NCBI GenBank assembly: GCA_964057225.1
Contig: OZ059895.1
Coordinates: 10,106,001-10,170,000, forward strand
DNA length: 64,000 nt
DNA from: Auanema rhodensis
Lineage: Eukaryota > Animalia > Nematoda
Direction: 5' to 3'
The translations under genes and the position numbers were made by a program. Below, piece after piece: positions 1 through 38,336 of this stretch (the first letter of the stretch is position 1; every line of letters starts with the position of its first letter). Under the pieces are notes generated by a model that did not search any database, was not told where the DNA came from, and was given only the letters and a program-made list of their open reading frames with translations.

Positions 1-1669
1 GTAACAAATGTTTTCAATTTTCAAGCATTTTTACTTAGATAGCTCAACCAAAGGAGAGCAAATTATCTTCATTCTTATTTCTATATTACAGTTATAAACC
101 AGTAGTTATTGAACCTTCATCTTAACTTTACTGTTTCTATCTATTTCCTATCGAAACAAACATTGTTTAAACACTATGCAACTTTGAAACCCTTTTTAAT
201 TTATTGTTTTTGGAGCTCATAAGATTTGATATCATCGAGGGATCCTGATGGAACGTGGAAAATTACATAACTAACATCAAATTGGAAAAAAAACTGAAAC
301 GAGGATAAGTATGTTAACCATTGAATATCAGATATTTTCGCTTACGACCATACCACGTTAAAAGTACGCCATACAGCTGATTTTTAATTTTATCTCTTCC
401 GTAACAAATGTTTTCAATTTTCAAGCATTTTAACTTAGATAGCTCAACCAAACGAGAGCAAATTATCTTCAATCTTATTTCTATATTGCAGTTATGAACC
501 AGTAGGTAATGAACCTTCGTCTTGACTTCACTGTTTTTATCTTTTTCCTATCGAAACTAACATTGTTTAAACACTATGCAACTGTGAAACCTTTTTTAAT
601 TTATTGTATTTGGAGCTCATAAGATTTGATATCATCGAGGGATCCTGATGGAACGTGGAAAATTACATAACTAACATAAAATTTGAAAAAAAACTATAAC
701 GAGGATAAGTAGGTAAACCATTGAATATCAGATATTTTCGCTTACGACCATACCACGTTGAAAGTACGCCATCCCGTCCGATCTGGCAAGTCAAGCAACG
801 TTGGGCCCGGTTAGTACTTGGATCGGAGACGGCTTGGGAATCCCGGGTGCCGTAAGCTTTTCAAATTTTTTTAACGATCATAACACGTTGAAAGTACGCC
901 ATACAGCTGATTTTCAATTTTATCTCTTCTGTAACAAATTTTTTCAATTTTTAAGCAGTTTTACTTGGATAGCTCAACCGAAGCAGAGCAAAATATCTAC
1001 AATCTTATTTCTATATTACAGTTATAAACCAGTAGTTATTGAACCTTCATCTTAACTTTACTGTTTCTATCTATTTCCTATCGAAACAAACATTGTTTAA
1101 ACACTATGCAACTTTGAAACCCTTTTTAATTTATTGTTTTTGGAGCTCATAAGATTTGATATCATCGAGGGATCCTGATGGAACGTGGAAAATTACATAA
1201 CTAACATCAAATTGGAAAAAAAACTGAAACGAGGATAAGTATGTTAACCATTGAATATCAGATATTTTCGCTTACGACCATACCACGTTAAAAGTACGCC
1301 ATACAGCTGATTTTTAATGTTATCTCTTCCGTAACAAATGTTTTCAATTTTCAAGCATTTTAACTTAGATAGCTCAACCAAACGAGAGCAAATTATCTTC
1401 AATCTTATTTCTATATTGCAGTTATGAACCAGTAGGTAATGAACCTTCGTCTTGACTTCACTGTTTTTATCTTTTTCCTATCGAAACTAACATTGTTTAA
1501 ACACTATGCAACTGTGAAACCTTTTTTAATTTATTGTATTTGGAGCTCATAAGATTTGATATCATCGAGGGATCCTGATGGAACGTGGAAAATTACATAA
1601 CTAACATAAAATTTGAAAAAAAACTATAACGAGGATAAGTAGGTAAACCATTGAATATCAGATATTTTC
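1..1669 (+). repeat. 5S rDNA / 5S-derived satellite array, left part (400-bp and 530-bp units)
   Basis: The 5S 5'-end GCTTACGACCATACCACG recurs at 340, 740, 1270 and 1670 (spacings 400, 530, 400), and the spacers are near-identical. Confidence 0.95.
740..858 (+). rRNA. 5S rRNA gene, full length
   Basis: 119 nt, GCTTACGACCATACC...GGTGCCGTAAGCT, closely resembling C. elegans 5S. The ends pair (GCTTACG/CGTAAGC) and T-runs follow as a Pol III terminator. Confidence 0.97.
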
Positions 1670-1737
1670 GCTTACGACCATACCACGTTGAAAGTACGCC
1701 ATCCCGTCCGATCTGGCAAGTCAAGCAACGTTGGGCC
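1670..1737 (+). pseudogene. 5S rRNA gene, 5' half (nt 1-68), interrupted by the LTR element
   Basis: Identical to 740-807, then switches to LTR sequence TGTCG at 1738. Confidence 0.95.
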
Positions 1738-2067
1738 TGTCGTTTGACAACTGGACTATTACCTCCAAGTATCAGTCCAAGTATGGAGTCGGTTCGTATG
1801 AGTGCGGTATTATGCGTTAAGACAAGTTAAATGAAGAAAGGTTTATTCAACAAAATGCAACAATAGTAAATTGAACAAGTGGATTGATTTAAGAATTTCC
1901 AAGAAATTCCTAAAATCAAAACAAAATTGGTGAGACATAAAAATTTTAACCATTTGGTTCTCCCTTTTATAGGGAGGCACCAGATGGTTAAAGGGGGTGG
2001 AGTTAATACAAAAAATACAACAAAACGTTAACACAATAAAGTTCGTATTTTCACGTTGACCGTGACA
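1738..2067 (-). repeat. 3' LTR (330 bp)
   Basis: No difference from 11616-11945 seen by eye. AATAAA on the minus strand at 1842-1847. Preceded on the minus strand by GCCGGGAA, a short PPT-like tract. Confidence 0.96.
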
Positions 2068-2076
2068 TTCCCGGCA

Positions 2077-2538
2077 TTATGTATGTCTTTTACGTTTGAC
2101 GTCACCACAGACCACCCCATGGTGAGTATCGGCCTTGCACTTATAGCAGGACACTTCGCACATTGCTGAATGTTTTGGGTTCAAACATTTTATGCATAGT
2201 CCCAATTCGTGTAAGCGTATGGTACGCTCTGGGGACGAGGGGTAAATCGGACAAGCAGCTGTACGATGGCCATCAGCTGTAGGCTTGTTGCAGAATATGC
2301 AGGAGGCTTTAGGAGCCGTCTGAACAGCTAAATTATCGAGCTTTAGATTCAGTGTGTTGTTGATGTTATCCAGGCGCGCGGAAATGTGGTTGACAGCGCT
2401 GGCGAGGTTATCATAAAACCTTTTCTCTAGAACCATTAGCTGCCTTAGGTTGGCAGTGGTGTTGGGTAGATGAGAATAATTTTTGAGATCTTCCTCAAAG
2501 GAAGTGTTCTCACTTAAATTGGACGTTATTTCATCCAT
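2077..2538 (-). CDS. Accessory protein, 153 aa: coiled-coil + three Cys/His knuckles + basic tail (CERV/Rev-like candidate)
   Basis: ATG lies 5 nt after the acceptor TTTTTCTCAATTCAG (AG at 2545-2544). Motifs CIFC-x7-H-x4-C, CIKC-x4-H-x3-C, CYKC-x4-HH-x3-C and a KRKRH tail. The stop lies 9 nt from the 3' LTR. Function is inferred. Confidence 0.8.
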   Translation of the reverse strand: MDEITSNLSENTSFEEDLKNYSHLPNTTANLRQLMVLEKRFYDNLASAVNHISARLDNINNTLNLKLDNLAVQTAPKASCIFCNKPTADGHRTAACPIYPSSPERTIRLHELGLCIKCLNPKHSAMCEVSCYKCKADTHHGVVCGDVKRKRHT

Positions 2539-2658
2539 TAGCACTGAATTGAGAAAAACAATGGTTTCCCTCTTTATATATTTGTTCGCATCTGTGGGTT
2601 GACCTATGATAAACGTCCCTTAGTTTATTGTAGAATAGTATGTGTTTACGGATACAAT

Positions 2659-2668
2659 GTATAAAAAG
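2659..2668 (+). promoter_or_regulatory. Candidate TATA box for the antisense gene
   Basis: GTATAAAAAG, ~320 bp upstream of the first ATG, followed by a very T-rich outron-like tract. Confidence 0.4.
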
Positions 2669-2984
2669 CCTGTACAAAGGATTACTTTTTATGTATATTA
2701 TTCGGATAAATAAACTTGATGTTATCAAAGATTGAAGATCTTGATAAAAAGATTTGTTTGTTTATAACTGTTGCATTTGTTTCTATATGTAGTGATTTTC
2801 TTTTGTTTATATTATTTTATGACCTATTTTTGCTTTGTTTATATTTTTTACTATTGTACTACGTGTGATTAGTAATTTAATTTTTATTGTATTCGTGAAG
2901 TTTTTGTACTTCCCTCTTGACTTTATTTTTATTTTTTATTTTTTATTTTTTTTTTTTTTATTTTTATAGTTGTAATTGTTGCAG

Positions 2985-3412
2985 ATGTCACAATTACAGT
3001 ATCAGGTTGAAGAGGAGATTGGAGAAGACGAGCTCGGTCCATATGAACTATGCGAACGATGCAAGGCGCAAGATACTCATCGCATACGGGAGGGCCCGGT
3101 AAGCTTATTATTTTTTTTTTTAATTTAATTTAATTTATTTATTTATTTGTTTATTTTATTTTATCTCAGTATTGTTGCAGATGACAGACGATGAGCTTTA
3201 TCCGGAGGATGGAGTCGAGCCAACTCGGGAGCAGCTCATCTACATGTTCTCGAGGATGCCGTTGCCTCCCAACTGCAGATTCTGCAGGGCAAAGAACCCC
3301 CGCCACCACGAACGTGAGGAGGTAAGCTTATATATTTTAACTGTGAATGTAAGTATTGTTGTAGATGTCAGACGATGATGGTGAGGGGTATCCAGATATT
3401 TCACGTATATAG
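2985..3412 (+). CDS. Antisense three-exon gene inside the LTR element, 100 aa (exons 2985-3098, 3181-3321, 3365-3412)
   Basis: GC-richer exons amid T-rich DNA. Donors G|GTAAGC at 3099 and 3322, acceptors TTGCAG/TTGCAG/TTGTAG, and both introns (82 and 43 nt) are phase 0. The spliced frame is open to TAG at 3410-3412, with AATAAA at 3478. Confidence 0.8.
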
Positions 3413-3477
3413 TGTTTTTGTTTTGTTTTTGTTTTTTTTTTTTTTTTTTTGTTTTTAAACTGTTCTTATAGCTAATT

Positions 3478-3483
3478 AATAAA
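3478..3483 (+). terminator. Polyadenylation signal of the antisense gene
   Basis: AATAAA 65 nt after the stop, followed by a long T tract. Confidence 0.55.
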
Positions 3484-3534
3484 GTTTTTTTTTTTTTTTT
3501 TTTTTTTTTTTATTACTACAGTAAGATTAGTGTT

Positions 3535-5055
3535 TTAATTTTTATTTGTGCTAGACTCAGCTCTGTGTCTAGGATTCCTGAGCATTTTTCTCAGTAATGA
3601 TGTAATGATCATTACAATTTTTATCATCTGAACGATTAATTTTTGTATGATTATGATGATTACAATTATTGCTTGTACTCCTATTATATAAGATAATACT
3701 GGTATAAAAACAGTTATCAGGAGGAAGCATAATGATAATGCCCAATTTGTTTTAATTACATCCAAAATGTTTCTCCAGGTGTTAGCATTTGTCACAATGT
3801 TGATGATTGTTTTTTCAACATCTGGGATTTTACTATCCCATTGTAATGTTCCTTGTATGATCACGCGGTGTTTTTCATTAGCACATGTTACGAAGCATTC
3901 TTCATAGATTTCAGAATGTTCTGAGTAATATTCCACAGCAGTAAGTGGCATGTGTGGGGCGCATTCAATCATGTATATGTTCTCACTACATTGCATTGTG
4001 ATCCAAGAATCCTTTTGTGATATACACATAAACTCGGCAACAGCCGTTCTTCTACAGCTGTGACACCCGGAAAGTTTTTTAAATTCCGGTCGACAAGGAA
4101 AGTCGTACAGGAAGGTACGAGACGACACATTCCCTTGTAGTTGAAGAACAACAGTTGATTCATCAGTTTGAGGAATAAGTGTTAATTTGTTTTCTTTCAT
4201 GGTAATTAGGGTGTTCTTGGTGTTCATTGGTAATAAGTTTGCCTGATTGAAAATATTATCAGATGGACAGGTACATGTTAGCTCTTCCCTTTTTGATATT
4301 TTACAGTTACATAACTTCAGTATTTTACAAGAGTTAAATTCATTTGTAGTTTGATCTTTGGTTTTGCATGCTACTTCACTCATAGTATGAGGTTCCATGT
4401 AATAACTGTTTATGGTTGATAATGCATATTTGGTGTTTAAATATCGGGTTGGTGGTACAATATGGGAGATTGAGCTTATATTAAAGTTTGGAAAATTAAC
4501 AGTGTCGTATGGTTTTAAAAGAATATTAATATTGGCTTTGTGTTTAAATAGATCATACTTTACCTCTAATGGTATATTCATTTCCCAAGAATCACATTCT
4601 ACTATTTCATAAACTATTTCATTGATTGGTTTAAATTCAGTTTGATAGAATGAGCAACCGTCTTCTAGAGACCAACATCCGCAGAAAAGAGAGCCACATC
4701 GCCTAGCACAACCAACTTGTGTTGGTCCTTCTTCTTTATCAAATTCTTGTAATTGTCCAATAGGATTTATAGCTTCACAAGTGTGATTACAAGATCCTGT
4801 TCCATAACAGGAATATCGAGTTTTGTATTGAATTGTGCTTTCTCGAGTATAATATAGCGTACTTTTCTGGCAAATGTATTCTGTTGGTTTTTTCGTTATT
4901 TCTATTTTACCGATAGATTTATTTTGGTAAATGAATTCTAAGCAAGCGTCTCTTATGCCTTTATTGAAATTGATTTCATTATCGTATTCTTGATAACAAT
5001 TTGTCCGATTAATGCAAATTATATTTATTGAATGCTTAATATGTGAGTTTGAACA
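3535..5055 (-). other. Env domain: phlebovirus Gc (G2)-like class II fusion glycoprotein
   Basis: Internal signal LSIALMVLLITVES/C, Cys-rich ectodomain with CYGTGSC and a fusion-loop-like CARRCGSLFCGCWSLEDGCSFY, and a C-terminal hydrophobic anchor. This env type is known from nematode BEL/Pao elements such as Cer7 and Atlas. Confidence 0.88.
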
Positions 5056-8000
5056 AGATTCCACTGTTATTAATAATACCATGAGTGCTATCGATAATTG
5101 TAATGAAGTGAATGATGATGTTCTCATGTAATTTGGAATTTTAATAGTTTCTGGAATATCATTTTTCCATTTTGGAGTTACATTGTCAATTTTCGTGGCT
5201 ACTGTGTTTTCCTTTTGTACGGCTACATCGTCTGAACTTGTTAATATTTTTGAATTAGGTTTTCCACTTCTAACTTCGGTTTGTATCGTTTGCCAATTAT
5301 CATTTAAAAATTTATACCAATATTGGTCATTTTTATGAGCTTTCAATACTCTTTTACAAATTGCTAATATAGTAAATAATAGTATAATTGGTATGAAAAA
5401 TGTTATCAAAGTCGTTAATGGATTACATTGTGGGAAATATAATGCTTCCGCTGTAAGCAATTCAGAGGATTGGCATGTAGCCTCAATCGTTGGAATTATT
5501 CCAAGAAGAGCTACTTTTGGAACATTTGTTTTTATTTTATTTTTCTTAAAATAACTTCTTACCGCTGCTTGACTACCCTGTGTTTTTGTTCTGAACCATC
5601 TATTTAGATTTGAAGGTTTGGATTCATTTTCGGTTTGAAGAGTTATCTCATTTGTTTGATCTTCCTCTTGTTCTAAGTTCGTATTATTAGCATCATTTTC
5701 GTCTCCTGCGTCGTTGATGATATTCATGTTGGGTGTATAGATTTCGAGTGGTATTACATTGTTACTTTGTTCACTTTCTTGAGTATTTTCAATAATTTCA
5801 ATATTTTCCACCCGATTTCCTTTTTGTGTTACCGTCCCGGTGATTAAAAATGGATTCACTTGGTATTTTTTATTGTATCTCATTGAGTGAGGTTCTGACG
5901 CAAACGGTGCTGCTTCTGCGTTTCTCACTTCTAGTGGATATATGTGATTTAATGAACGAGTTGTTATTAGACCAGTGCCAGTTATTAGTTTTGCAGATCT
6001 AACTTCCCCATCTGCACTTTTTATTAGTTCTATTATGCGTCCTAATTTCCATTTACCTCTACTTGAATCCTCATTTTGTATTATAATAACTTCGCCTTCT
6101 TGTGGTTTCTTAGCGTTCGTTGCAGGTTGTTTTCTGTTGTGTTTGTAAATATCTCTAAGATACAGTAAATACTCTGAATAGAATTTTTTCCAGAATAATT
6201 GAGTTACATCGTTAGATAACTCTATTGCTTCAATGGCTTGCTCTATAGTTTGTATTGTCCTGCTATTGATAGTTTTATCATAAATTCGGGTATTCGATAC
6301 GTTTGAAGAAAGTGTAAACCTGATGGAACGGTTTAAAAAATCACAAGGTCTGATAGGCAAAATGTTCAGGTTGGATGGGTTCGGATGTGTAAGCGGGCGA
6401 GTATTCAAAATTGTTTCGATTTTTACAATTACTGTATGTATATCATCAATTGACATTAATCTATTTCCAATTGTTTTGTATAGTGCTAACTTTGTTAGTC
6501 CTACTAGTCTTTCCCATGTTCCACCTTTCCATGGAGCCTGTGGTGTGTTGAAGTACCATTTAATATTCTTTTCGGCAAGATAATTGGTTAATGTTTTTTC
6601 ATTTTTAGATTCATGGTTTTCTGTGTAAAATTCTATTACTTTAGCACTTAATAAGAAATTTCCTCCATTATCGCTTCGTATTATTTCTGGAATACCTCTT
6701 CTTCCAATGAACCTTTCGAAAGCGTTTAAGAATGCCTTTGTTGATTGGTCAAAAACTATTTCTAAGTGTATAGCTCTTATAGCTAAACAAGTAAAGAGAC
6801 ATATAAATATCTTTTTACCATCCTTTATGGTTATTGGACCTAATAAGTCACAACCTGTACTCATGAATGGTTTTGTTAGAATTACTCTATCCTTAGGCAA
6901 TGCTGGCATTAAGGACGTTCCAAACGGCAAAGCGTTGTATCTATTGCAGATTGTGCATGTTTTGAGAACTGATCTGACTATGCTTGATGGTTTATTTAAA
7001 AAGTATTTTTGACGCAAGAGTGTTAGAACAAAATCTCTTCCTTGGTGCATGCATTCTCTGTGTAAATGCATAATTATGTGTTCTGTGTACGGAGAATCCC
7101 TTGGAAGATATATGGGATTTTGAGTTTCAAACGGTAATTCCGAGTTGTTCAATCTACTACGAACTCTGATTATTTCTTCATCGAGAAAAAATACAAAACC
7201 TTCATGTTTTTTCGTGAGGAGATCTATTGTTACATGCTGTTGTGCTTTACTTATTAGTAGTTTGGTTATAATCTCAATATCATTAGCTGTAGTTTGCCAG
7301 TTTTCATCTAATTGCATTACTTTATTTAACCTTGTTATAGCTGTGGGATGTACTTTTATGATCCAATGTCTCAAGAATTTACTTACTTTAACTATAGTTT
7401 TCAGTAAGGTATAGTTGTTGCTACGTAATTTGAATATATCTTCAACTGGTATTTGTGTTATTTGTTGTTGTTCAACGGTATCGATCAAGGTTGTTATATT
7501 CCAAATAGGCTCATATTCAATTTCTTCAATGTGTGACTTTGTTTGGGTTAACCATTGTGGTCCTTTAATCCACATAGAATCACTTAGTTCTTGGAGACAA
7601 GCTCCTCGAGAACCAATATCGGCTGGGTTATAATCACCATTCACATGAAAAAGTTTGATTTTAATGTTATTTTCCTTCAATTTATCTATATACTTCCTTA
7701 CATTGTCGACGCGACAGCCTACATATGGTGGTAAAGTTTTCTGATGGTTAGCTATCCAATGTAAGGCTACCTTACTGTCACTGGCTACGTGTACAGTTTT
7801 AAGGTGATTGGTTGTAGATGTGATATTATCAGCTAACATAATACCTAATAGTATGGCAATGAGTTCTAGTCTTGGGATAGTTAGATTTCCCTTTTTTGCA
7901 ATTTTCGACTTTCCGCTTACAAGTTGGCTTATTTTACCATTGGTTTCAATGTATGTGCAGGCAGCAATGGCTAGTTTACTAGCATCAGTAAATACCCATA

Positions 8001-11000
8001 ATATAGAGTCATTCAGGTTTAACTTTCTTTCAAGTCTCAATTCCTTTTCATTTAATAATTCATTTATGACTAAATTCCATTTATGTGTTATTTCTTGGGG
8101 TAATTCAACATCCCAACCCTTGAATTGATCACTTGATTCTCTTAATAATAATTTTAATGGTAAAATCAATGGGCTTGCCATGCCTAATGGATCAAATATT
8201 GAATGTATTTGACTTAACATGTTCCTGTGCGTATTGATTTCAAATTTCTTTAATTTGAGTATAAGAACGAATAAATCTAATTTTGTATCATAATTTAAAC
8301 CCAAAATTTTGGTAGTATTATGTGGGTATTTGTCTTCATTGTTCATATCTTCAGTAACTTTTGGATTGTTGCTCATAAATTCTCTTAAATTCATAGAAAT
8401 GCCTTGTAAGATTTTCTTGGCTTTTTCGCATTTTATCTTAGCTTCTTCAACACTGTTTGCATATAAAATTATATTGTCAACATATAAAGAATCGAGCAAG
8501 TGACTAGCGTAAGGGTCGGTATGATTATTGAGGTACCAAGCTAAGCTCATGCTTAATATACCCGGGGACGCTGTTATACCAAATGGTAGCCGTTTGAATT
8601 GGTATGTCATGACGTTATATTTATTTACCGATTCATTTTCGTTTCTGATCCAGAAAAATTTACAATATTTTCTGTGCTCTTCTTTAATACTTATTTGTAA
8701 AAATGCTGACTCAATGTCGCAGGTTATTATTATTGGACTTTTTCTACATTTTATTAATATATCATGAATTTTGTGAATAAATGTTTGGCCTGAATGCATA
8801 ACTTGGTTCAACGATGGACTATTTTTTTGTTTTGCTGAAGCATCAAACACGATTCTTAAAGGTCGAGCTTTTTCTTTTCTCCACACTCCATGATGTGGTA
8901 AGAAAAATCCATCTTCGGCTGATTCATCAACAATTGGCTCGATAATTCCCTTTTGAATGTATTCATTTATTAATTTTTTATACCATTCTAGTTGTTCTTT
9001 ATTAGAGTGTAGATTTTTCCATAATGTCATGAATCTATGAAAAGCTGGCCATTTATTATTTTTCAATTTATTCAAATAATTTTTAAATGGAAACGGAGCT
9101 TCAATTCTCCCGGCTTTAATGGATAGTTCTTTACTATATTCTTTAAGATAATTCTCTGCTTCTGCATTGTTATCTACTATGGTGCTTATTCCAATAGTAT
9201 CGATAAGGAAAAGTTCTTTCAGTTTTGTTTCTGGAGGTGGTTCATGACTTTGTTCCTCTTCAATGCTACACAGAGTTACAATTTTTTCAAGTTTAGTTTC
9301 TCCATTTATAAGAGTTCCAAATACAGATCCTTTACATAAAAGATCAGAGGGAAGTCTGAATTCTTCATTGTCTTTTACAAACAATTTTAATCTATCTTGT
9401 CCAATTAAAACATCCGGTTCAAAAACTTCCCCATTTGTATCGGTTTTGGCTAATATAATATTGTTTTCTTTAATGAAACTCAAATCCTTTCTTGAAAGAT
9501 AAGGACTATATATGTGGGAACTGATTTTTGGTTTAGTGAGCATTTCAGTTACAATTAAATTTTTCTCTTTAGTATAGAATATTGTGTTAACTATACTTGA
9601 AACATGAGAATGTTTCATTCCTCCAATACCATGAAATGTTTTTTTATGTTTGGATTTAACTGGTAGTTTCATCCTTTTTGCTAGATCTTCTCTGATAAAA
9701 GATCGTTGAGAACAATCATCAAAGATAATGTTAACTTTCTCATAACTATCGCTATTGTAATTGAACAAATTTGCTTTTGCTGTTCGTAAAATTATTTGGC
9801 CTTTTTCTACGTCATGATTACCAACAATTGTGGTTAAACTTGTGGGTTCTTCATGTGCTTTCTTTGGAATAATTGTTTGATTATTTCTGGTCTTTTCTTC
9901 ATCATTATCCCTTTGTAAAGAAATGTTGGTGATGACTCCATTTCTATTCTGATTTCTTTTATTTTGGTAACAAACTGAAATGTTGTGATCATCATGACAG
10001 CTGTTGCATTTAAACTTTGGCCATGTGCAGTTTTTGCTTTGATGATTGTCTGCAAAGCATACATAACATAGCCTTTTTTCTCTTAAAATTTTCCTTTTTT
10101 CCGTTGTTTCAACAGGACACATATGGCTATTGTGTGAATTGTTCGCGCAAAAAACGCAATTCCTTCTTTGTTTCAAATCTTTAACTTCATTCAATCGAAA
10201 TTGTTTTTTAGTTTGATCACCATCTGGATTTTTTCTTTTTTCATTGTTACTGAGATACAGTGTTTCAGTGTTTTCAGTCATCTGTAGTAGTTTTACTTGC
10301 GCCGAAATATGTTCAATGATTTTCTCGTGGGACCATTCAAAATTTTGTTTGATGTGAATATCTTTGATTATTTCAAATGGGAATTTATTGAGTACGGTAG
10401 CAACATAAAGCTCTTTGGTTAATGATCCTCCCGCCGCTTGAATCTGTCGCAGCAGAGCTTTTATCTCTCTTAGCGTTTGAGCACAACTATCGGCTCGTCT
10501 TGAAGCTTTTGGCACCTTATTCAACTTGTTGATCAGCGTTGCTGTATCAACAGCGTATGAGGAATATTCTTCCTTCAAACAATTTTTCATAAACTCATAG
10601 TTTTCTTCGGTACCGGGAATTCCCCTAAGAAGATATTCGGCTTCACCTGATAAGGACTCACATAGGAAGTTCACTTTTTCACTTATAGAGAAAGATTCAT
10701 TGTTATCAATCATTCTCATGAATCTATCCCAGAATAAAGGGAATTTTTCCGGAGTACCGTCAAAGGTTGGAGTTTTTAATACGGGTCTTTGCAGTATTTG
10801 GTTAATCAGTCTTACTTCATTAACATGCTGATCATGCACTACCTGATCGGGTAAACTGTTTTGTTTTTCTTGTACCTCGTTTGTACAATTTTCATATTCT
10901 TTTTCTTCTGTATATTCAACTCTTTCCCGAAGTTGTTGTAATTCAAGTTGTATTTCCATATCTTTGATTTTTTCTTTATTTTTATCAATGAGGTTTTTTA

Positions 11001-11367
11001 AGAATATCAACTTGTCATTTAATTCCAGAATTATTAACGTGGCATTGCCACGGATGTCTCCTTTTTCACCTTCTTCGATTTTTGTAAATTTTTTGTTTAA
11101 TTCTTTTTGGAGCTCTTCTTCTAAAAGCTCACAAACTCTTTGAAAATTTATTTCAATGGTTTCAATTGATTGGAGTTTATTCTCCAAAATATTCAAGTAA
11201 TTTTTAACTCTTGCACATTCATTCTCTTGCGCAATAATTTGATTTACCGGCTCAGACAATTCTGAGTAATCGGTCATTTTCTTATAGTTTTCAACTTTAG
11301 AATTCAGTTTATTCAAAAATTCTAATTCTCTCCCCATTTGGAGAATATATCTTTGAGCGGAGGACAT
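3535..11367 (-). CDS. Gag-Pol-Env polyprotein (2610 aa from first ATG)
   Basis: Uninterrupted ORF. Gag motif PTFDG..F..FW..F, knuckles CVFC/CYVC/CNSC, protease-position FDDCSQRSFI, RT LRIVFDAS..DIESAFLQI..RLPFG..YVDN (8473-8484), RNase H VFTDAS..TIPRLEL, integrase H..H..CTIC + SDNG + GGTWERLV, then glycoprotein. Confidence 0.96.
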   Translation of the reverse strand: MSSAQRYILQMGRELEFLNKLNSKVENYKKMTDYSELSEPVNQIIAQENECARVKNYLNILENKLQSIETIEINFQRVCELLEEELQKELNKKFTKIEEGEKGDIRGNATLIILELNDKLIFLKNLIDKNKEKIKDMEIQLELQQLRERVEYTEEKEYENCTNEVQEKQNSLPDQVVHDQHVNEVRLINQILQRPVLKTPTFDGTPEKFPLFWDRFMRMIDNNESFSISEKVNFLCESLSGEAEYLLRGIPGTEENYEFMKNCLKEEYSSYAVDTATLINKLNKVPKASRRADSCAQTLREIKALLRQIQAAGGSLTKELYVATVLNKFPFEIIKDIHIKQNFEWSHEKIIEHISAQVKLLQMTENTETLYLSNNEKRKNPDGDQTKKQFRLNEVKDLKQRRNCVFCANNSHNSHMCPVETTEKRKILREKRLCYVCFADNHQSKNCTWPKFKCNSCHDDHNISVCYQNKRNQNRNGVITNISLQRDNDEEKTRNNQTIIPKKAHEEPTSLTTIVGNHDVEKGQIILRTAKANLFNYNSDSYEKVNIIFDDCSQRSFIREDLAKRMKLPVKSKHKKTFHGIGGMKHSHVSSIVNTIFYTKEKNLIVTEMLTKPKISSHIYSPYLSRKDLSFIKENNIILAKTDTNGEVFEPDVLIGQDRLKLFVKDNEEFRLPSDLLCKGSVFGTLINGETKLEKIVTLCSIEEEQSHEPPPETKLKELFLIDTIGISTIVDNNAEAENYLKEYSKELSIKAGRIEAPFPFKNYLNKLKNNKWPAFHRFMTLWKNLHSNKEQLEWYKKLINEYIQKGIIEPIVDESAEDGFFLPHHGVWRKEKARPLRIVFDASAKQKNSPSLNQVMHSGQTFIHKIHDILIKCRKSPIIITCDIESAFLQISIKEEHRKYCKFFWIRNENESVNKYNVMTYQFKRLPFGITASPGILSMSLAWYLNNHTDPYASHLLDSLYVDNIILYANSVEEAKIKCEKAKKILQGISMNLREFMSNNPKVTEDMNNEDKYPHNTTKILGLNYDTKLDLFVLILKLKKFEINTHRNMLSQIHSIFDPLGMASPLILPLKLLLRESSDQFKGWDVELPQEITHKWNLVINELLNEKELRLERKLNLNDSILWVFTDASKLAIAACTYIETNGKISQLVSGKSKIAKKGNLTIPRLELIAILLGIMLADNITSTTNHLKTVHVASDSKVALHWIANHQKTLPPYVGCRVDNVRKYIDKLKENNIKIKLFHVNGDYNPADIGSRGACLQELSDSMWIKGPQWLTQTKSHIEEIEYEPIWNITTLIDTVEQQQITQIPVEDIFKLRSNNYTLLKTIVKVSKFLRHWIIKVHPTAITRLNKVMQLDENWQTTANDIEIITKLLISKAQQHVTIDLLTKKHEGFVFFLDEEIIRVRSRLNNSELPFETQNPIYLPRDSPYTEHIIMHLHRECMHQGRDFVLTLLRQKYFLNKPSSIVRSVLKTCTICNRYNALPFGTSLMPALPKDRVILTKPFMSTGCDLLGPITIKDGKKIFICLFTCLAIRAIHLEIVFDQSTKAFLNAFERFIGRRGIPEIIRSDNGGNFLLSAKVIEFYTENHESKNEKTLTNYLAEKNIKWYFNTPQAPWKGGTWERLVGLTKLALYKTIGNRLMSIDDIHTVIVKIETILNTRPLTHPNPSNLNILPIRPCDFLNRSIRFTLSSNVSNTRIYDKTINSRTIQTIEQAIEAIELSNDVTQLFWKKFYSEYLLYLRDIYKHNRKQPATNAKKPQEGEVIIIQNEDSSRGKWKLGRIIELIKSADGEVRSAKLITGTGLITTRSLNHIYPLEVRNAEAAPFASEPHSMRYNKKYQVNPFLITGTVTQKGNRVENIEIIENTQESEQSNNVIPLEIYTPNMNIINDAGDENDANNTNLEQEEDQTNEITLQTENESKPSNLNRWFRTKTQGSQAAVRSYFKKNKIKTNVPKVALLGIIPTIEATCQSSELLTAEALYFPQCNPLTTLITFFIPIILLFTILAICKRVLKAHKNDQYWYKFLNDNWQTIQTEVRSGKPNSKILTSSDDVAVQKENTVATKIDNVTPKWKNDIPETIKIPNYMRTSSFTSLQLSIALMVLLITVESCSNSHIKHSINIICINRTNCYQEYDNEINFNKGIRDACLEFIYQNKSIGKIEITKKPTEYICQKSTLYYTRESTIQYKTRYSCYGTGSCNHTCEAINPIGQLQEFDKEEGPTQVGCARRCGSLFCGCWSLEDGCSFYQTEFKPINEIVYEIVECDSWEMNIPLEVKYDLFKHKANINILLKPYDTVNFPNFNISSISHIVPPTRYLNTKYALSTINSYYMEPHTMSEVACKTKDQTTNEFNSCKILKLCNCKISKREELTCTCPSDNIFNQANLLPMNTKNTLITMKENKLTLIPQTDESTVVLQLQGNVSSRTFLYDFPCRPEFKKLSGCHSCRRTAVAEFMCISQKDSWITMQCSENIYMIECAPHMPLTAVEYYSEHSEIYEECFVTCANEKHRVIIQGTLQWDSKIPDVEKTIINIVTNANTWRNILDVIKTNWALSLCFLLITVFIPVLSYIIGVQAIIVIIIIIQKLIVQMIKIVMIITSLLRKMLRNPRHRAESSTNKN

Positions 11368-11595
11368 TATTTTAGCCTTCCTCAATGGATATTTCAGATT
11401 CAGCGATATTTTTATCGTCTTATTGTTTCTTGACAAGTGATTTCTTGTCAACTCGGATTTTCTACGAGTTCTTCGGAATTTTATTTCTCCGGCGGTTCTA
11501 TATAACCTTTAACACAATGTTCTTCGGAATTTATTTTTCCGGCGGTTCTATATAACCTTTGTTTTAAACTTTCCTTATCAGTAAGCAACTGAAAT

Positions 11596-11613
11596 ATCCT
11601 GCCGTGGTCGCCA
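11596..11613 (-). promoter_or_regulatory. Primer binding site, tRNA-Arg
   Basis: Minus strand TGGCGACCACGGCAGGAT starts 2 nt after the 5' LTR and is complementary to the tRNA-Arg 3' end ...ATCCTGCCGTGGTCGCCA (recalled sequence). Confidence 0.85.
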
Positions 11614-11615
11614 AA

Positions 11616-11945
11616 TGTCGTTTGACAACTGGACTATTACCTCCAAGTATCAGTCCAAGTATGGAGTCGGTTCGTATGAGTGCGGTATTATGCGTTAAGA
11701 CAAGTTAAATGAAGAAAGGTTTATTCAACAAAATGCAACAATAGTAAATTGAACAAGTGGATTGATTTAAGAATTTCCAAGAAATTCCTAAAATCAAAAC
11801 AAAATTGGTGAGACATAAAAATTTTAACCATTTGGTTCTCCCTTTTATAGGGAGGCACCAGATGGTTAAAGGGGGTGGAGTTAATACAAAAAATACAACA
11901 AAACGTTAACACAATAAAGTTCGTATTTTCACGTTGACCGTGACA
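11616..11945 (-). repeat. 5' LTR (330 bp)
   Basis: TGTCA...CGACA on the minus strand, TATA-like CTATAAAAG at 11842-11850, and AATAAA at 11720-11725. Confidence 0.96.
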
Positions 11946-12001
11946 GGGCCCGGTTAGTACTTGGATCGGAGACGGCTTGGGAATCCCGGGTGCCGTAAGC
12001 T
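11946..12001 (+). pseudogene. 5S rRNA gene, 3' half (nt 64-119)
   Basis: GGGCCCGGTTAGTAC...GTAAGCT resumes right after the LTR, with GGGCC duplicated. Confidence 0.95.
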
Positions 12002-13210
12002 TTTCAAATTTTTTTAACGATCATAACACGTTGAAAGTACGCCATACAGCTGATTTTCAATTTTATCTCTTCTGTAACAAATTTTTTCAATTTTTAAGCA
12101 GTTTTACTTGGATAGCTCAACCGAAGCAGAGCAAAATATCTACAATCTTATTTCTATATTACAGTTATAAACCAGTAGTTATTGAACCTTCATCTTAACT
12201 TTACTGTTTCTATCTATTTCCTATCGAAACAAACATTGTTTAAACACTATGCAACTGTGAAACCTCTTCAATTTATTGCATTTGGAGCTCATAAGATTTG
12301 ATATCATCGAGGGATCCTGATGGAACGTGGAAAATTACATAACTAACATGAAATTGGAAAAAAAACTAAAACGAGGATAAGTATGTTAACCATTGAATAT
12401 CAGATATTTTCGCTTACGACCATACTACGTTAAACGTACGCCATACAGCTGATTTTTAATTTTATCTCTTCCGTAACAAATGTTTTCAATTTTCAAGCCT
12501 TTTTACTTAGATAGCTCAACCAAAGGAGAGCAAATTATCTTCATTCTTATTTCTATATTACAGTTATAAACCAGTAGTTATTGAACCTTCATCTTAACTT
12601 TACTGTTTCTATCTATTTCCTATCGGAACAAACATTGTTTAAACACTATGCAACTTTGAAACCCTTTTTAATTTATTGTTTTTGGAGCTCATAAGATTTG
12701 ATATCATCGAGGGATCCTGATGGAACGTGGAAAATTACATAACTAACATTAAGTTGGAAAAAAAACTGAAACGAGGATAAGTATGTTAACCATTGAATAT
12801 CAGATATTTTCGCTTACGACCATACCACGTTAAAAGTACGCCATACAGCTGATTTTTAATTTTATCTCTTCCGTAACAAATGTTTTCAATTTTCAAGCAT
12901 TTTAACTTAGATAGCTCAACCAAACGAGAGCAAATTATCTTCAATCTTATTTCTATATTGCAGTTATGAACCAGTAGGTAATGAACCTTCGTCTTGACTT
13001 CACTGTTTTTATCTTTTTCCTATCGAAACTAACATTGTTTAAACACTATGCAACTGTGAAACCTTTTTTAATTTATTGTATTTGGAGCTCATAAGATTTG
13101 ATATCATCGAGGGATCCTGATGGAACGTGGAAAATTACATAACTAACATGAGATTGCAAAAAAACTAAAACGAGGATAAGTATGTTAACTATTGAATATC
13201 AGATATTTTC

Positions 13211-13329
13211 GCTTATGACCATACCACGTTGAAAGTACGCCATCCCGTCCGATCTGGCAAGTCAAGCAACGTTGGGCCCGGTTAGTACTTGGATCGGAGA
13301 CGGCTTGGGAATCCCGGGTGCCGTAAGCT
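13211..13329 (+). rRNA. 5S rRNA gene (C6T variant)
   Basis: Same as 740-858 except GCTTAT. Confidence 0.92.
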
Positions 13330-14935
13330 TTTCAAATTTTTTTAACGATCATAACACGTTGAAAGTACGCCATACAGCTGATTTTCAATTTTATCTCTTC
13401 TGTAACAAATTTTTTCAATTTTTAAGCAGTTTTACTTGGATAGCTCAACCGAAGCAGAGCAAAATATCTACAATCTTATTTCTATATTACAGTTATAAAC
13501 CAGTAGTTATTGAACCTTCATCTTAACTTTACTGTTTCTATCTATTTCCTATCGAAACAAACATTGTTTAAACACTATGCAACTGTGAAACCTCTTCAAT
13601 TTATTGCATTTGGAGCTCATAAGATTTGATATCATCGAGGGATCCTGATGGAACGTGGAAAATTACATAACTAACATGAAATTGGAAAAAAAACTAAAAC
13701 GAGGATAAGTATGTTAACCATTGAATATCAGATATTTTCGCTTACGACCATACTACGTTAAACGTACGCCATACAGCTGATTTTTAATTTTATCTCTTCC
13801 GTAACAAATGTTTTCAATTTTCAAGCATTTTTACTTAGATAGCTCAACCAAACGAGAGCAAATTATCTTCAATCTTATTTCTATATTGCAGTTATGAACC
13901 AGTAGGTAATGAACCTTCGTCTTGACTTCACTGTTTTTATCTTTTTCCTATCGAAACTAACATTGTTTAAACACTATGCAACTGTGAAACCTTTTTTAAT
14001 TTATTGTATTTGGAGCTCATAAGATTTGATATCATCGAGGGATCCTGATGGAACGTGGAAAATTACATAACTAACATGAGATTGCAAAAAAACTAAAACG
14101 AGGATAAGTATGTTAACTATTGAATGTCAGATATTTTCGCTTACGACCATACCACGTTAAAAGTACGCCACACAGCTGATTTTTAATTTTATCTCCGTAA
14201 CAAATGTTTTCAATTTTCAAGCATTTTAACTTAGATAGCTCAACCAAAGGAAAGCAAATTATCTTCAATCTTATTTCTATATTACAGTTATAAACCAGTA
14301 GTTATTGAACCTTCGTCTAGACTTTAGTGTTTTTATCTATTTCCTATCAAAACAAACATTGTTTAAACACTATACAACTATGAAAACTTTTTTAATTTAT
14401 TGTATTTGGAGCTCATAAGATTTGATATCATCGAGGGATCCTGATGGAACGTGGAAAATTACATAACTAACATAAAATTTGAAAAAAAACTAAAACGAGG
14501 ATAAATAGGTAAACCATTGAATATCAGATATTTTCGCTTACGACCATACCACGTTGAAAGTACGCCATACAGCTGATTTTTAATTTTATCTCTTCCGTAA
14601 CAAATGTTTTCAATTTTCAAGCATTTTTACTTAGATAGCTCAACCAAAGGAGAGCAAATTATCTTCAATCTTATTTCTATATTACAGTTATAAACCAGTA
14701 GTTATTAAACCTTCATCTTAACTTTACTGTTTCTATCTATTTCCTATCGAAACAAACATTGTTTAAACACTATGCAACTTTGAAACCCTTTTTAATTTAT
14801 TGTTTTTGGAGCTCATAAGATTTGATATCATCGAGGGATCCTGTCGGAACGTGGAAAATTACATAACTAACATTAAATTGGAAAAAAAACTAAAACGAGG
14901 ATAAGTATGTTAACCATTGACAATCAGATATTTTC

Positions 14936-15054
14936 GCTTACGACCATACCACGTTGAAAGTAAGCCATCCCGTCCGATCTAGCAAGTCAAGCAACGTTGG
15001 GCCCGGTTAGTACTTGGATCGGAGACGGCTTGGGAATCCCGGGTGCCGTAAGCT
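14936..15054 (+). rRNA. 5S rRNA gene (two substitutions)
   Basis: Same as 740-858 except GTAAGCC and ATCTAGC. Confidence 0.88.
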
Positions 15055-16264
15055 TTTCAAATTTTTTTAACGATCATAACACGTTGAAAGTACGCCATAC
15101 AGCTGATTTTCAATTTTATCTCTTCTGTAACAAATTTTTTCAACTTTTAAGCAGTTTTACTTGGATAGCTCAACCGAAGCAGAGCAAAATATCTACAATC
15201 TAATTTCTATATTACAGTTATAAACCAGTAGTTATTGAACCTTCTTCTTAACTTTACTGTTTCTATCTATTTCCTATCGAAACAAACATTGTTTAAACAC
15301 TATGCAACTGTGAAACCTCTTCAATTTATTGCATTTGGAGCTCATAAGATTTGATATCATCGAGGGATCCTGATGGAACGTGGAAAATTACATAACTAAC
15401 ATGAAATTGGAAAAAAAACTAAAACGAGGATAAGTATGTTAACCATTGAATATCAGATATTTTCGCTTACGACCATACTACGTTAAACGTACGCCATACA
15501 GCTGATTTTTAATTTTATCTCTTCCGTAACAAATGTTTTCAATTTTCAAGCATTTTTACTTAGATAGCTCAACCAAAGGAGAGCAAATTATCTTCATTCT
15601 TATTTCTATATTACAGTTATAAACCAGTAGTTAATGAACCTTCATCTTAACTTTACTGTTTCTATCTATTTCCTATCGAAACAAACATTGTTTAAACACT
15701 ATGCAACTTTGAAACCCTTTTTAATTTATTGTTTTTGGAGCTCATAAGATTTGATATCATCGAGGGATCCTGATGGAACGTGGAAAATTACATAACTAAC
15801 ATCAAATTGGAAAAAAAACTGAAACGAGGATAAGTATGTTAACCATTGAATATCAGATATTTTCGCTTACGACCATACCACGTTAAAAGTACGCCATACA
15901 GCTGATTTTTAATTTTATCTCTTCCGTAACAAATGTTTTCAATTTTCAAGCATTTTAACTTAGATAGCTCAACCAAACGAGAGCAAATTATCTTCAATCT
16001 TATTTCTATATTGCAGTTATGAACCAGTAGGTAATGAACCTTCGTCTTGACTTCACTGTTTTTATCTTTTTCCTATCGAAACTAACATTGTTTAAACACT
16101 ATGCAACTGTGAAACCTTTTTTAATTTATTGTATTTGGAGCTCATAAGATTTGATATCATCGAGGGATCCTGATGGAACGTGGAAAATTACATAACTAAC
16201 ATAAAATTTGAAAAAAAACTATAACGAGGATAAGTAGGTAAACCATTGAATATCAGATATTTTC

Positions 16265-16383
16265 GCTTACGACCATACCACGTTGAAAGTACGCCATCCC
16301 GTCCGATCTGGCAAGTCAAGCAACGTTGGGCCCGGTTAGTACTTGGATCGGAGACGGCTTGGGAATCCCGGGTGCCGTAAGCT
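16265..16383 (+). rRNA. 5S rRNA gene, full length
   Basis: Identical to 740-858. Confidence 0.96.
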
Positions 16384-18334
16384 TTTCAAATTTTTTTAAC
16401 GATCATAACACGTTGAAAGTACGCCATACAGCTGATTTTCAATTTTATCTCTTCTGTAACAAATTTTTTCAATTTTTAAGCAGTTTTACTTGGATAGCTC
16501 AACCGAAGCAGAGCAAAATATCTACAATCTTATTTCTATATTACAGTTATAAACCAGTAGTTATTGAACCTTCATCTTAACTTTACTGTTTCTATCTATT
16601 TCCTATCGAAACAAACATTGTTTAAACACTATGCAACTTTGAAACCCTTTTTAATTTATTGTTTTTGGAGCTCATAAGATTTGATATCATCGAGGGATCC
16701 TGAAGGAACGTGGAAAATTACATAACTAACATAAAATTTGAAAAAAAACTATAACGAGGATAAGTATGTTAACTATTGAATGTCAGATAATTTCGCTTAC
16801 GACCATACCACGTTAAAAGTACGCCACACAGCTGATTTTTAATTTTATCTCCGTAACAAATGTTTTCAATTTTCAAGCATTTTAACTTAGATAGCTCAAC
16901 CAAAGGAAAGCAAACTATCTTCAATCTTATTTCTATATTACAGTTATAAACCAGTAGTTATTGAACCTTCGTCTAGACTTTACTGTTTTTATCTATTTCC
17001 TATCAAAACAAACATTGTTTAAACACTATACAACTATGAAAACTTTTTTAATTTATTGTATTTGGAGCTCATAAGATTTGATATCATCGAGGGATCCTGA
17101 TGGAACGTGGAAAATTACATAACTAACATAAAATTTGAAAAAAAACTAAAACGAGGATAAGTAGGTAAACCATTGAATATCAGATATTTTCGCTTACGAC
17201 CATACCACGTTGAAAGTACGCCATACAGCTGATTTTTAATTTTATCTCTTCTGTAACAAATGTTTTCAATTTTCAAGTATTTTAACTTAGATAGCTCAAC
17301 CAAACGAGAGCAAATTATCTTCAATCTTATTTCTATATTACAGTTATAAACCAGTAGTTATTGAACCTTCATCTTAACTTTACTGTTTTTATCTATTTCC
17401 TATCGTAACAAACATTGTTTGAACACTATGCAATTTTGAAACCTCTTCAATATATTGCATTTGGAGCTCATAAAATTTGATATTATCGAGGGTTCCAGAT
17501 GGAACGTGGAAAATTACATAACTAACATAAAATTGGAAAAAAAACTATAACGAGGATAAGTAGGTAAACCATTTAATATCAGATATTTTTGCTTACGACC
17601 ATACCACGTTCAAAGTACTCCATGCAGCTGATTTTCAATTTTATCTTTTAAGTAACAAATGTTTTCAATTTTCAAGCAGTTTTATTTAAATAGCTCAACC
17701 AAAGGAGAGCAAATTATCTTCAATCTTATTTCTATATCACAGTTATAAACCAGTAGGTAATGAACCTTCGTCTTGACTTTACTGTTTTTATATATTTCCT
17801 ATCAAAACAAACATTGTTTAAACACTATACAACTATGAAACCTTTTTTAATTCATTGTATTTGGAGCTCATAAGATTTGATATCATCGAGGGATCCTGAC
17901 GGAACGTGGAAAATTACATAACTGACATGAAATTGAAAAAAAAACTAAAACGAGTATAAGTATGTTAACCATTGAATATCAGATATTTTCTCTTACGACC
18001 ATACTACGTTGAAAGTACGCCATACAGCTGAATTTCAATTTTATCTTTTCCGTAACAAATGTTTCCAATTTTCAAGCAGTTTTACTTAGATAGCTCAACC
18101 AAAGGAAAGCAAATTATCTTCAATCTTATTTCTATATTACAGTTAAAAAGCAGTAGTTAATGAACCTTCATCTTACCTTCACTTTTTCTATCTATGTCCT
18201 ATCAAAATAAACATTGTTTAATCACTATATATTTGTGAAATCTTTTTTATTTTATTGAATTTGGAACTCATAAGATTTGATATCATTGATGAATCCAGAT
18301 GGAACGTGGAAAATTACATAACTAACATGGAATT

Positions 18335-20570
18335 TGTAACATACATGTCTCAAAGGAAAGCAGCTGACCATGGCAGCTGCTATTATAAAACTAATGCAGA
18401 TAGTTTTAAGACATTCTGAGAATATTCTAGATGTTTTTTTTATAAGCTTTCTAACATTTTGTGTGAACTGAGTGGGAGTTGCATGGATATATAAACCTGA
18501 GTCTTCAACACTCAGGCATCTCATTTTCTCTTTATCTCATCATCATCTCTTCATCTTCTCTTTCTTTTCTAGCTTAAATCTTTGTATAATTATATCATAA
18601 TGCAAACAATAAACCTTTATATGTTTTATCTCTTCTTTCTTATTTCCCCATACATTATACACTTATAGTTTAAATCATACTCAACCTCTCATAGTCTGTT
18701 TGGACTTCTCAACTTAAAACCATTAAGAATCTAAATAGAACGTGGAGGTTTCACCGAGATCCTTCCATTTGGACAGGATCTCGTAAAGAAACTCAAGCGC
18801 TACCTTCTACAACTCTTATTCAATTAAAAATCTTTTCTCTCTAAAACAGTTAGCTTATAATATTTTTATTAAAAAATTCTAAAACTTTTCTACTAAAAAT
18901 TATATCCAAAAACTCAGTTTTCTATTCATTATGTTATTCTCATAAATCATTTTCATTTATTCATAAAAGTACCTATTTATCATTCTCTCTACCCAAAATC
19001 CTAGATACGAAAAATTATTCAAATTCAATAAATAACTTTTCAAAGAATTATCAGTTTATTTTCACATTTTTTTGAACAAATATAGTTAATTTCTTTATAA
19101 AATTATTTTCGAATTAAGAAATAAAAAGGAATATTGATTCTATACCTCTCAATTTTGATCATCTTATCATACTATCTTTTTATTTTCTTTATGTTCGTTC
19201 ATAAAACTATTATTCTACTACACTGTATTCTCATAAACCCACCCCTTCGCCTCCCATAATTTAATAAGCAAGAAATCCCGTGTTAAACACGACAGCAAAA
19301 ATTTTTATTAGGCGCAGCGTTTCCGAATTCCGATTACCTTAGCACCTGAAAAAGGCGAAAAATAATTAAATTAATCAATAAGTTTTAAACACCCGCAGTA
19401 AGCTCATCCCCACCCCTACTAAACTCACCTTCATCCATTGATCATTCTACATCTGGGCATTCTCTATCTCCGTCTCTTCCATCGCAAACTAATCAAGCAA
19501 ATACTTTTGTTGCAGAAAACCAGAGAACTAACCCAAGAATGGACCCAATGGACGAAGGCGCTCCACTTACGCAAACCTCGGGAAGGGCACCTGTTCTAAC
19601 ACCTACAATCATTCCTCAACCAGCAGCGATTCGGTCCGCCATACGCGATATAAAAGCTTCACGCTACGATGGAAAAACACCATTCAACCGCTATTTACTA
19701 TACCTAGACGAACACTTCAACAGGTAGTGGAACTCTAATCTCCTTCAACTCAACCTCAATCTTAGGACGATCAAGAAGACATGCAATCACGGAATACCCT
19801 AAAGGATTCTCGACAGTTCATCAATACCCCTAGCTAAGATATTCAGCTAGCAAAACTGGAACTATTCTACTATATACAACCTATATTCAACGGAAAAGAC
19901 TTGACATCCATTACATCCTCAATAACATAACAAATATGTTACCTAAATATATCGCAATCTTCAACTACCTAGGTATAAATTTTGATGTTATCTAAAATCG
20001 TCTTATATGGCACAAATATGAAGACGTCAATATAGCCATTCTACACGCCCTAAGAGAAGCAGAAATAAGAGAAGCAACAAAAATTGCGATCGATAATCTA
20101 TCGTATAAGGAACTTACGCATAAACTTAGCAAACGGACCACAATTAAGGATTTTAAGAAGACATTACCAACCAAAACAGGAGTACTATGAAATCGCAAAA
20201 GAAATTGCTTACTCACTTGCGGAAATACCTACTACGTTAGCTACAGAAGAAACAACATCATCTTTAGAAGAATACTTATATCAACTCATGCCACCAAGAA
20301 AACCAAGACTCAGCAAGACACGAAACGATTTAGAATTGTACGAACAACTAGCACAAGCAAAAATATTCCTGAACGCAATAAACAATCCAAAGAAGCTACA
20401 TTAAAAAAAAGAATACAAAGCAGAAATGAAGAAATGGATCAAATATGAAAAAGAACTAAACTTACAACCATTACAACTGCCAAACTACACAGTTATCTTC
20501 AATGGCGACGATATACATATTCTATGGTTTCCGGAAAAGAAATCCTACAAATTATAACATTACACAAGAG
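18335..20570 (+). mobile_element. Degenerate Ty3/gypsy-like LTR element, copy 1 (5' LTR ~18335-18742, deleted gag/env)
   Basis: TGTAAC start interrupts the satellite. TATATAAA and AATAAA precede the PBS, and there is a deletion junction at ~19721. The right boundary is approximate. Confidence 0.75.
18743..18760 (+). promoter_or_regulatory. Primer binding site, tRNA-Gln (also at 22602-22619 and 27888-27905)
   Basis: TGGAGGTTTCACCGAGAT matches the complement of the tRNA-Gln 3' end (TGGAGGTTCCACCGAGAT, recalled) at 17/18. Confidence 0.75.
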
Positions 20571-35498: not shown

Positions 35499-35745
35499 TC
35501 AGTTGACCTCCCACTCGTCAGTTGACCTCCCACTCGTCAGTTGACCTCCGCTGTTTGGATCCGGATCCGTTTCTGTCAAGGAAATTTTCGTCGGACTGGC
35601 TTTGTCAAGGTGCGCTCTCTTTCGTATCGCATTTTAGTTTTATCATTATTTCCTTTCTCTCGTATTTGTTTCTTTTTTATTTTCCACTTCAGTGTTTATT
35701 CTTATTCTTTCTTACTTCCCTTCTTTTACTCCCTCGTTTTTCAAT

Positions 35746-38140: not shown

Positions 38141-38336
38141 GCTGTTTGGATCCGGATCCGTTTCTGTCAAGGAAATTTTCGTCGGACTGGCTTTGTCAAG
38201 GTGCGCTCTCTTTCGTATCGCATTTTAGTTTTATCATTATTTCCTTTCTCTCGTATTTGTTTCTTTTTTATTTTCCACTTCAGTGTTTATTCTTATTCTT
38301 TCTTACTTCCCTTCTTTTACTCCCTCGTTTTTCAAT

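Follow-up and report, generated by a model that had tools for sequence, protein, structure and literature searches.

A candidate intron-bearing antisense gene between env and the 3' LTR of a BEL/Pao element in the nematode Auanema rhodensis

Antisense genes of retroelements and the element at this locus

Antisense protein-coding genes are already known from a few vertebrate retroviruses and from plant Tat-lineage retrotransposons. The retroviral antisense proteins include HBZ, ASP, and APH-2, of which HBZ has a spliced isoform and is expressed from a TATA-less promoter in the 3' LTR (PMC10186651). In plants, antisense ORFs situated between pol and the 3' LTR are known in Retand, Grande, and RIRE2 elements, and that of Grande was reported to be transcribed from its own promoter (PMC11963269). 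The antisense transcripts of TART, a non-LTR element of Drosophila, contain introns without a significant ORF (PMC1636488). For BEL/Pao elements or nematode endogenous viruses, no antisense protein-coding gene is reported in the survey and papers searched. The nematode Belpaoviridae are represented by Atlas virus of Ancylostoma ceylanicum and Cer13 of C. elegans, and the element described here, compared with them by description, shares their identical LTRs, single Gag-Pol-Env frame, Phlebovirus_G2-type fusion domain, and the YVDN variant of the reverse transcriptase motif that characterises their lineage (PMC9094657). Neither the description of Atlas virus (PMC9094657) nor the BEL/Pao survey mentions an accessory or antisense gene.

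The locus lies in a 64-kb window of the Auanema rhodensis genome, the window being the whole stretch of DNA that was analysed (64,000 nucleotides of contig OZ059895.1, positions 10,106,001 to 10,170,000, in assembly GCA_964057225.1). A single LTR element of 10,208 bp occupies 1738..11945 on the minus strand. It was delimited by its LTR pair and assigned by its Pfam domains, and is an intact-looking, recently inserted BEL/Pao element of belpaovirus-like type with a phlebovirus-type env. The two 330-bp LTRs (3' LTR in element orientation at 1738..2067, with TG...CA ends; 5' LTR at 11616..11945) are identical at 330/330 aligned positions, and the insertion is flanked by a 5-bp target-site duplication (1733..1737 on the left, 11946-11950 on the right) in a 5S rRNA gene. 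Between the LTRs, a single Gag-Pol-Env ORF of 2638 aa (3535..11451, minus strand), in which no stops or frameshifts were found, matches the Pfam families DUF1759, RVT_1, Peptidase_A17, Integrase_H2C2, DUF5641, and Phlebovirus_G2. The BEL/Pao signature domains DUF1759, Peptidase_A17, and DUF5641 were matched with E values of 6e-15 to 3e-33, and the Phlebovirus G2 (Gc) class II fusion glycoprotein domain (PF07245; E 1.2e-48) spans residues 2133-2434 in the same frame as Gag-Pol; the YVDN motif is seen in the translation of this ORF. No second copy of the element was found elsewhere in the 64-kb window. A 31-nt direct repeat, 97% identical between its two units (11480-11510 and 11530-11560), is present in the 5' leader, which separates the LTR from gag.

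The surroundings of the element are repetitive. The interrupted 5S rRNA gene is represented by two pieces (1670-1737 and 11946-11998) that share the 5-bp duplication and align end to end with an intact copy at 740-858. Arrays of a 400-bp satellite occupy 1-1737, 11946-18336, and 43571-64000, the last with approximately 51 copies at 93% match, and the satellite units of the arrays within 1-18336 begin with a 5' fragment of 5S rRNA. Full 5S genes, at 740, 13211, 14936, 16265, 21721, and 27007, are interspersed with satellite units. Further along, LINE-like ORFs with Exo_endo_phos endonuclease and reverse-transcriptase domains were identified at 32668-35533 (minus strand) and 38283-42336, together with two inverted 366-aa ORFs without a Pfam match (38283-39383, plus strand; 41236-42336, minus strand). 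A 286-aa ORF, likewise without a Pfam match, occurs twice (23398-24258 and 28684-29544), 5,286 bp apart, in a segment that has been duplicated together with a 5S gene.

The element differs from Atlas virus downstream of env. Atlas virus measures 9,204 nt, of which approximately 175 nt in total is non-coding (computed from PMC9094657), whereas the present element measures 10,208 bp and has 1,467 bp between the env stop (3535) and the 3' LTR (2067). Given how little of Atlas virus is non-coding, the extra 1.47 kb requires an explanation. Two features are situated in this interval: a sense-strand ORF next to the LTR and, nearer to env, three blocks on the opposite strand that resemble the exons of a spliced gene.

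Anatomy and statistics of the antisense blocks

A sequence-only reading of the window had proposed that three exons, richer in GC than their surroundings and inside an intact endogenous virus opposite gag-pol-env, splice in phase 0 to encode a 100-aa protein. The blocks do lie between the LTRs of an intact element, antisense to the 11451..3535 ORF, and their plus-strand translations (38, 47, and 15 aa plus a stop) match those given earlier. Predicted exon 1 (2985..3098; 114 nt, 38 codons, GC 0.50) begins with an ATG that abuts a TTGCAG acceptor and encodes a CxxC-x5-H motif. It is followed by predicted intron 1 (3099..3180; 82 nt, GC 0.13), which runs from GTAAGC to TTGCAG, and by predicted exon 2 (3181..3321; 141 nt, 47 codons, GC 0.57), which has ATG as its first codon and encodes CxxC-x6-HH. 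Predicted intron 2 (3322..3364; 43 nt, GC 0.26) runs from GTAAGC to TTGTAG, and predicted exon 3 (3365..3412; GC 0.42), again with ATG first, contributes 15 codons and the stop. The canonical signals claimed for this model, and their phase-0 joining, were all read where they had been placed, with GTAAGC donors at 3099 and 3322 and the acceptors TTGCAG, TTGCAG, and TTGTAG ending at 2984, 3180, and 3364, respectively. Both junctions are in phase 0 because the lengths of exons 1 and 2 (114 and 141 nt) are multiples of three, and removal of intron 1 is needed for a long open frame because an unspliced exon 1 meets a stop at 3126-3128. Intron sizes of 82 and 43 nt are typical of nematodes. The AATAAA that had been noted at 3478 is present (3478..3483, plus strand), 66 nt past the stop codon and 52 nt short of the opposite-strand env stop. 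Directly after it, at 3486-3512 and 23 nt past the env stop, is a T27 run on the plus strand (A27 on the element sense strand).

Base composition follows this anatomy closely. In keeping with the earlier description of the exons as GC-richer, GC content reaches 0.50, 0.57, and 0.42 in the three blocks; the two introns stand at 0.13 and 0.26, the flanking sequence ranges over 0.14-0.24, and the polyprotein ORF has 0.33. The plus strand is purine-rich within the blocks and T-rich outside them, and the composition steps coincide with canonical signals at 5/5 boundaries. The locus presents features of a spliced, nematode-type protein-coding gene, namely short GT-AG introns, phase-compatible exons, and a contrast in GC between exons and introns. 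When the blocks are summed, G makes up 0.35 of codon position 1 and A makes up 0.42 of codon position 2. Under a codon model trained on the element polyprotein, the predicted frame scored highest of the six in 3/3 blocks, by small margins. Openness of the reading frame alone says little here: in each block, stops are absent from two or three of the six frames.

The rarity of this arrangement was assessed in two ways. When both strands of the 64-kb window (128 kb) were scanned for units composed of YAG directly followed by ATG, 25-70 open codons, and an in-phase GTAAG, only exon 1 and exon 2 were returned, exon 2 also in a version that uses a donor further on, at 3349. In the whole window, this locus alone has the 10-nt acceptor block, in three copies, and the 10-nt donor block, in two. 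In a permutation analysis, letters were shuffled within the seven exon and intron compartments, and models with GT[AG]AG donors, YAG acceptors, at most two introns, and at least 101 codons were sought; 15 of 1000 permutations yielded any qualifying model. These observations support an antisense gene model that is internally consistent, statistically unusual, and beyond chance. A point against a gene is that the T-rich tracts may in part reflect the A-rich sense strand of the element as a whole.

The statistics should be read with the repeat structure of the blocks in mind. Each exon begins with ATG right after the same 10-nt acceptor block, and the exons are therefore diverged tandem repeats, with start-to-start spacings of 196 and 184 bp. 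Since the blocks are shared among repeats, the splice signals cannot be counted as separate events. When the repeats are compared, the acceptor block including the ATG is kept at 13/13 positions and the donor block, at whose identical sequence exons 1 and 2 both end, at 11/11 positions. The exon interiors have diverged to approximately 45% identity (a hand count on the alignment), and BLASTP detects no similarity between exons. The difference in exon length is a multiple of three, and the sole difference among the acceptors preserves YAG. Identical splice blocks together with lengths that differ by multiples of three suggest constraint on splicing and on reading frame.

The least secure part of the model is exon 3, which is also ambiguous. 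Over its acceptor and the codons that directly follow, this exon is a close match to exon 2, and it is optional, because retention of intron 2 gives an open model of 104 codons that ends at 3378; the spliced and the intron-2-retaining readings are thus both open, and several alternative 3' ends are possible. Moreover, because an ATG follows the acceptor in every exon, alternative trans-splicing could give nested shorter isoforms.

Two other accounts of the blocks were considered and rejected. Read on the minus strand, the blocks have open frames, but splice signals and pyrimidine tracts are absent in that direction and codon scores are poor. As for a retroposed or nested insertion, the homopolymers at the locus are T on the plus strand and are situated at the wrong end for poly(A) in either orientation, and no flanking repeats were found.

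The neighbouring sense ORF and the predicted antisense protein

The sense-strand ORF next to the LTR (ORF155; 2077..2544, minus strand) encodes 155 aa, or 153 aa from the first ATG at 2538, and ends 10 nt from the LTR. Its C-terminal half contains three Cys/His knuckles that align to the nucleocapsid region of the element's own Gag (E 6e-6; 29% identity over 76 positions), and its N-terminal half is predicted to be helical over residues 2-23 and 30-75 (AlphaFold2 without an alignment, at low confidence). Upstream of the ORF, whose GC content is 0.45, are a TATA-like motif and a T-rich stretch ending in CAG. When the ORF served as a control for the codon model, its own frame scored +6.9, compared to -43 or worse for the other frames. 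A word-indexed search among candidates of 85-271 aa returned no homologue, and no Pfam family was matched. ORF155 appears to be a second, diverged nucleocapsid-like gene. Judged from its sequence it is clearly coding, so that accessory coding capacity is indeed present downstream of env.

ORF155 and the antisense exons diverge, pointing apart across an AT-rich spacer of 440 bp (2545..2984; GC 0.24). The spacer contains two opposed TATA-like motifs, 80 nt apart, one at 2660-2668 on the plus strand toward the antisense exons and the other at 2580..2572 on the minus strand toward ORF155; such strings are frequent in the spacer. The earlier claim of a candidate TATA box at 2659 was correct as to the motif and one base early as to its position. 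The pair of opposed motifs suggests a bidirectional promoter. It should be noted that a promoter call made from TATA motifs carries little weight, because TATA-like strings are common in a spacer of 24% GC.

With 25 acidic (D+E) and 12 basic (K+R) residues among its 100, and 4 Cys, the predicted antisense product bears out its earlier description as acidic. Exons 1 and 2 both encode an acidic DEL-x-P motif and both encode CxxC-[KR]-A followed by a His at an equal distance from the donor. The sequence-only reading had seen in these two CxxC..H motifs a potential to bind metal. The motifs are indeed present; as zinc knuckles of the CCHC type (C-x2-C-x3/4-H-x4-C) they are incomplete, since exon 1 and exon 2 each lack the fourth Cys, and the databases lend them no support. 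The four Cys, as two CxxC pairs, could together hold one zinc ion. The protein is short and acidic and is probably largely disordered; for exon 2 modelled alone, AlphaFold2 returned a pLDDT of 70 and a pTM of 0.33, values of low confidence. As to its role, a small zinc-binding acidic regulator for the element, possibly partnering basic nucleocapsid-like proteins, is a guess made at low confidence, and the silencing-suppressor role suggested earlier is speculation.

Relatives of this protein were sought exon by exon, with exon 2 as the query of the length-unlimited search. A phmmer search of exon 2 against 1.84 billion representatives recovered no true relative; the sole match (P0001), a Bacteroidetes-type T9SS repeat protein aligned through a reiterated 18-residue motif, was rejected as spurious. 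Word-indexed searches returned no match for a 68-aa uninterrupted reading across exon 2 (candidates of 37-119 aa) or for a 50-aa reading across exon 1 (candidates of 27-87 aa). Likewise, no Pfam family was matched by exon 1 or exon 2 at E values up to 0.1, with TRP28 (PF04195) and bZIP among the families covered, no match to the exon queries was found among PDB sequences, and a tblastn search of the window found no paralogue. The protein, which had not been recognised in the earlier reading, thus has no relative, domain, or solved structure in these exon-by-exon searches. Because queries of 38-47 aa detect only close kin, the failed searches are weak negative evidence. By eye, the CxxC-K-A..D-T-H of exon 1 looks like the third knuckle of ORF155. 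An origin by inverted duplication of the element's own knuckles was considered and is unsupported, with no BLASTP alignment to ORF155 or to the knuckles, no inverted repeats, and no tblastn paralogue.

Alternative explanations, the preferred reading, and its meaning

The repeat structure admits an explanation without a gene, namely that the interval is a non-coding spacer built from 2.3 copies of an internal repeat of approximately 190 bp, and that the splice-like strings and the ORF are by-products of duplication. This would account for the regular spacing of 196 and 184 bp, for an ATG block common to three units and a donor block common to two, for the multiple open frames across the blocks, and for the failure to find homologues; moreover, Retand elements commonly have tandem repeats in this region (PMC11963269). 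It accounts less well for GC steps that fall sharply and exactly at the GT/AG signals, or for splice blocks that are perfectly kept beside interiors at approximately 45% identity by hand count, since neutral decay should affect both equally. Lengths in multiples of three and a predicted frame that scores best in 3/3 blocks also argue against it, and TRF lists no repeat of approximately 190 bp in the region. Fold z-scores of -1.6 to +1.6 gave no sign of a structured cis element. These scores, obtained for both strands, together with the absence of an Rfam match at E <=1, led to the rejection of a further candidate, a structured RNA element in the genomic RNA of the kind formed by CTE-like repeats. 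Overall, a repeat spacer is considered an unlikely explanation that retains some weight.

Alternatively, the splice signals and the transcript could be real and the ORF incidental, in which case a spliced antisense non-coding RNA might act by pairing with the genomic RNA or through small-RNA pathways. There is precedent in the antisense transcripts of TART, which have many introns and no ORF (PMC1636488), and it is in keeping with such an RNA that the repeats are best conserved in their splice blocks and that the protein is without relatives or a recognisable domain. Nevertheless, a non-coding RNA would not require block composition that is GC-rich, purine-rich, and frame-periodic, nor an ATG right after the first acceptor, nor a stop followed by AATAAA at a normal distance, and this alternative is judged distinctly improbable. 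A slightly poorer prospect still is that this copy or lineage captured part of an unspliced host gene in reverse orientation and now carries it as a passenger without a role. Transduction of genes by LTR elements is known, and captured genes are typically found in one or few copies (PMC11963269); the GC content of the blocks (0.50-0.57) is also far above that of the polyprotein ORF (0.33). However, ORF155 shares a raised GC content (0.45) and yet is clearly of retroelement origin, so that GC is no marker of foreign DNA here. In addition, exon 2 has no host-like protein match among the 1.84 billion representatives, and the predicted gene fits the gap without overlapping env or ORF155.

That the three blocks are a real antisense accessory gene of the element is the explanation preferred here; it is plausible and unproven, and its probability is put at somewhat below even. 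From the anatomy and the statistics, we infer expression, translation, and function along the following lines. The interval between env and the 3' LTR would be an accessory region of two small genes arranged back to back, the sense nucleocapsid-like ORF and the antisense gene. Transcription of the antisense gene would begin within the AT-rich spacer, proposed by inference only to be a promoter and outron region, or at a more distant site inside the 3' LTR. The 5' end of the mature RNA would be formed at the acceptor abutting the first ATG (2984/2985), most simply by spliced-leader trans-splicing in the nematode host; intron 1 (82 nt) would be removed, intron 2 (43 nt) usually so, and polyadenylation would occur after the AATAAA at 3478, shortly before the env stop is reached. 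It is established that genomic RNA does not present antisense-strand introns for splicing. Being antisense in the genomic RNA, the introns of this gene would persist through copying, outlasting each round because the genomic RNA never offers them to the splicing machinery. The survival of antisense introns through retrotransposition, which the sequence-only reading had invoked, is an established principle, and such introns are documented in TART (PMC1636488).

The preferred gene can be placed among the known systems by layout and by content. Its likeness to HBZ of HTLV-1, taken here by description, is one of layout only, in that both are antisense and sit at the end of the provirus that carries env and the 3' LTR. 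The HBZ protein, from a vertebrate deltaretrovirus, is an approximately 31-kDa bZIP factor, whereas the product predicted here is of approximately 100 aa and acidic, with no bZIP or other Pfam domain and no PDB match. The loose analogy to HBZ drawn earlier therefore holds for antisense position and fails for domain content, and HBZ is, moreover, driven from the 3' LTR (PMC10186651). The Tat-lineage elements Grande, RIRE2, and Retand share the arrangement of an ORF that is antisense to gag-pol and situated between the last sense gene and the 3' LTR, and the predicted gene occupies that same position. Unlike these Ty3/gypsy ORFs, which exceed 600 bp and mostly encode TRP28, it is found in an animal BEL/Pao element, its 300 nt of coding sequence is split by short introns, and it encodes no Pfam domain. 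With TART, the locus has in common short antisense introns with good splice signals that are kept through retrotransposition (PMC1636488). In contrast to the spliced antisense RNA of that non-LTR element, which has no significant ORF, the model at this locus has a 100-codon ORF with coding-like composition.

A broader claim can be made from the two genes together, and is regarded as rather doubtful: this would be a nematode belpaovirus lineage with a 'complex' genome, in which a divergent two-gene cassette, driven from an internal bidirectional region, would add a second, sense-strand nucleocapsid-like protein and, from an antisense gene with introns, a small, acidic protein that binds zinc. 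This antisense gene would be the first protein-coding one to be described from a BEL/Pao element or from any invertebrate LTR element. Should the gene not be real, the locus would serve as a warning that a multi-exon gene can be imitated by the duplication, within a GC-rich island, of a single splice-like unit. If it is real, the locus would be a natural case of introns preserved through antisense placement, and it would supply a small orphan protein whose partners could illuminate the dealings between element and host. Together with ORF155, it would also mean that invertebrate retrovirus-like elements evolved accessory-gene complexity independently.
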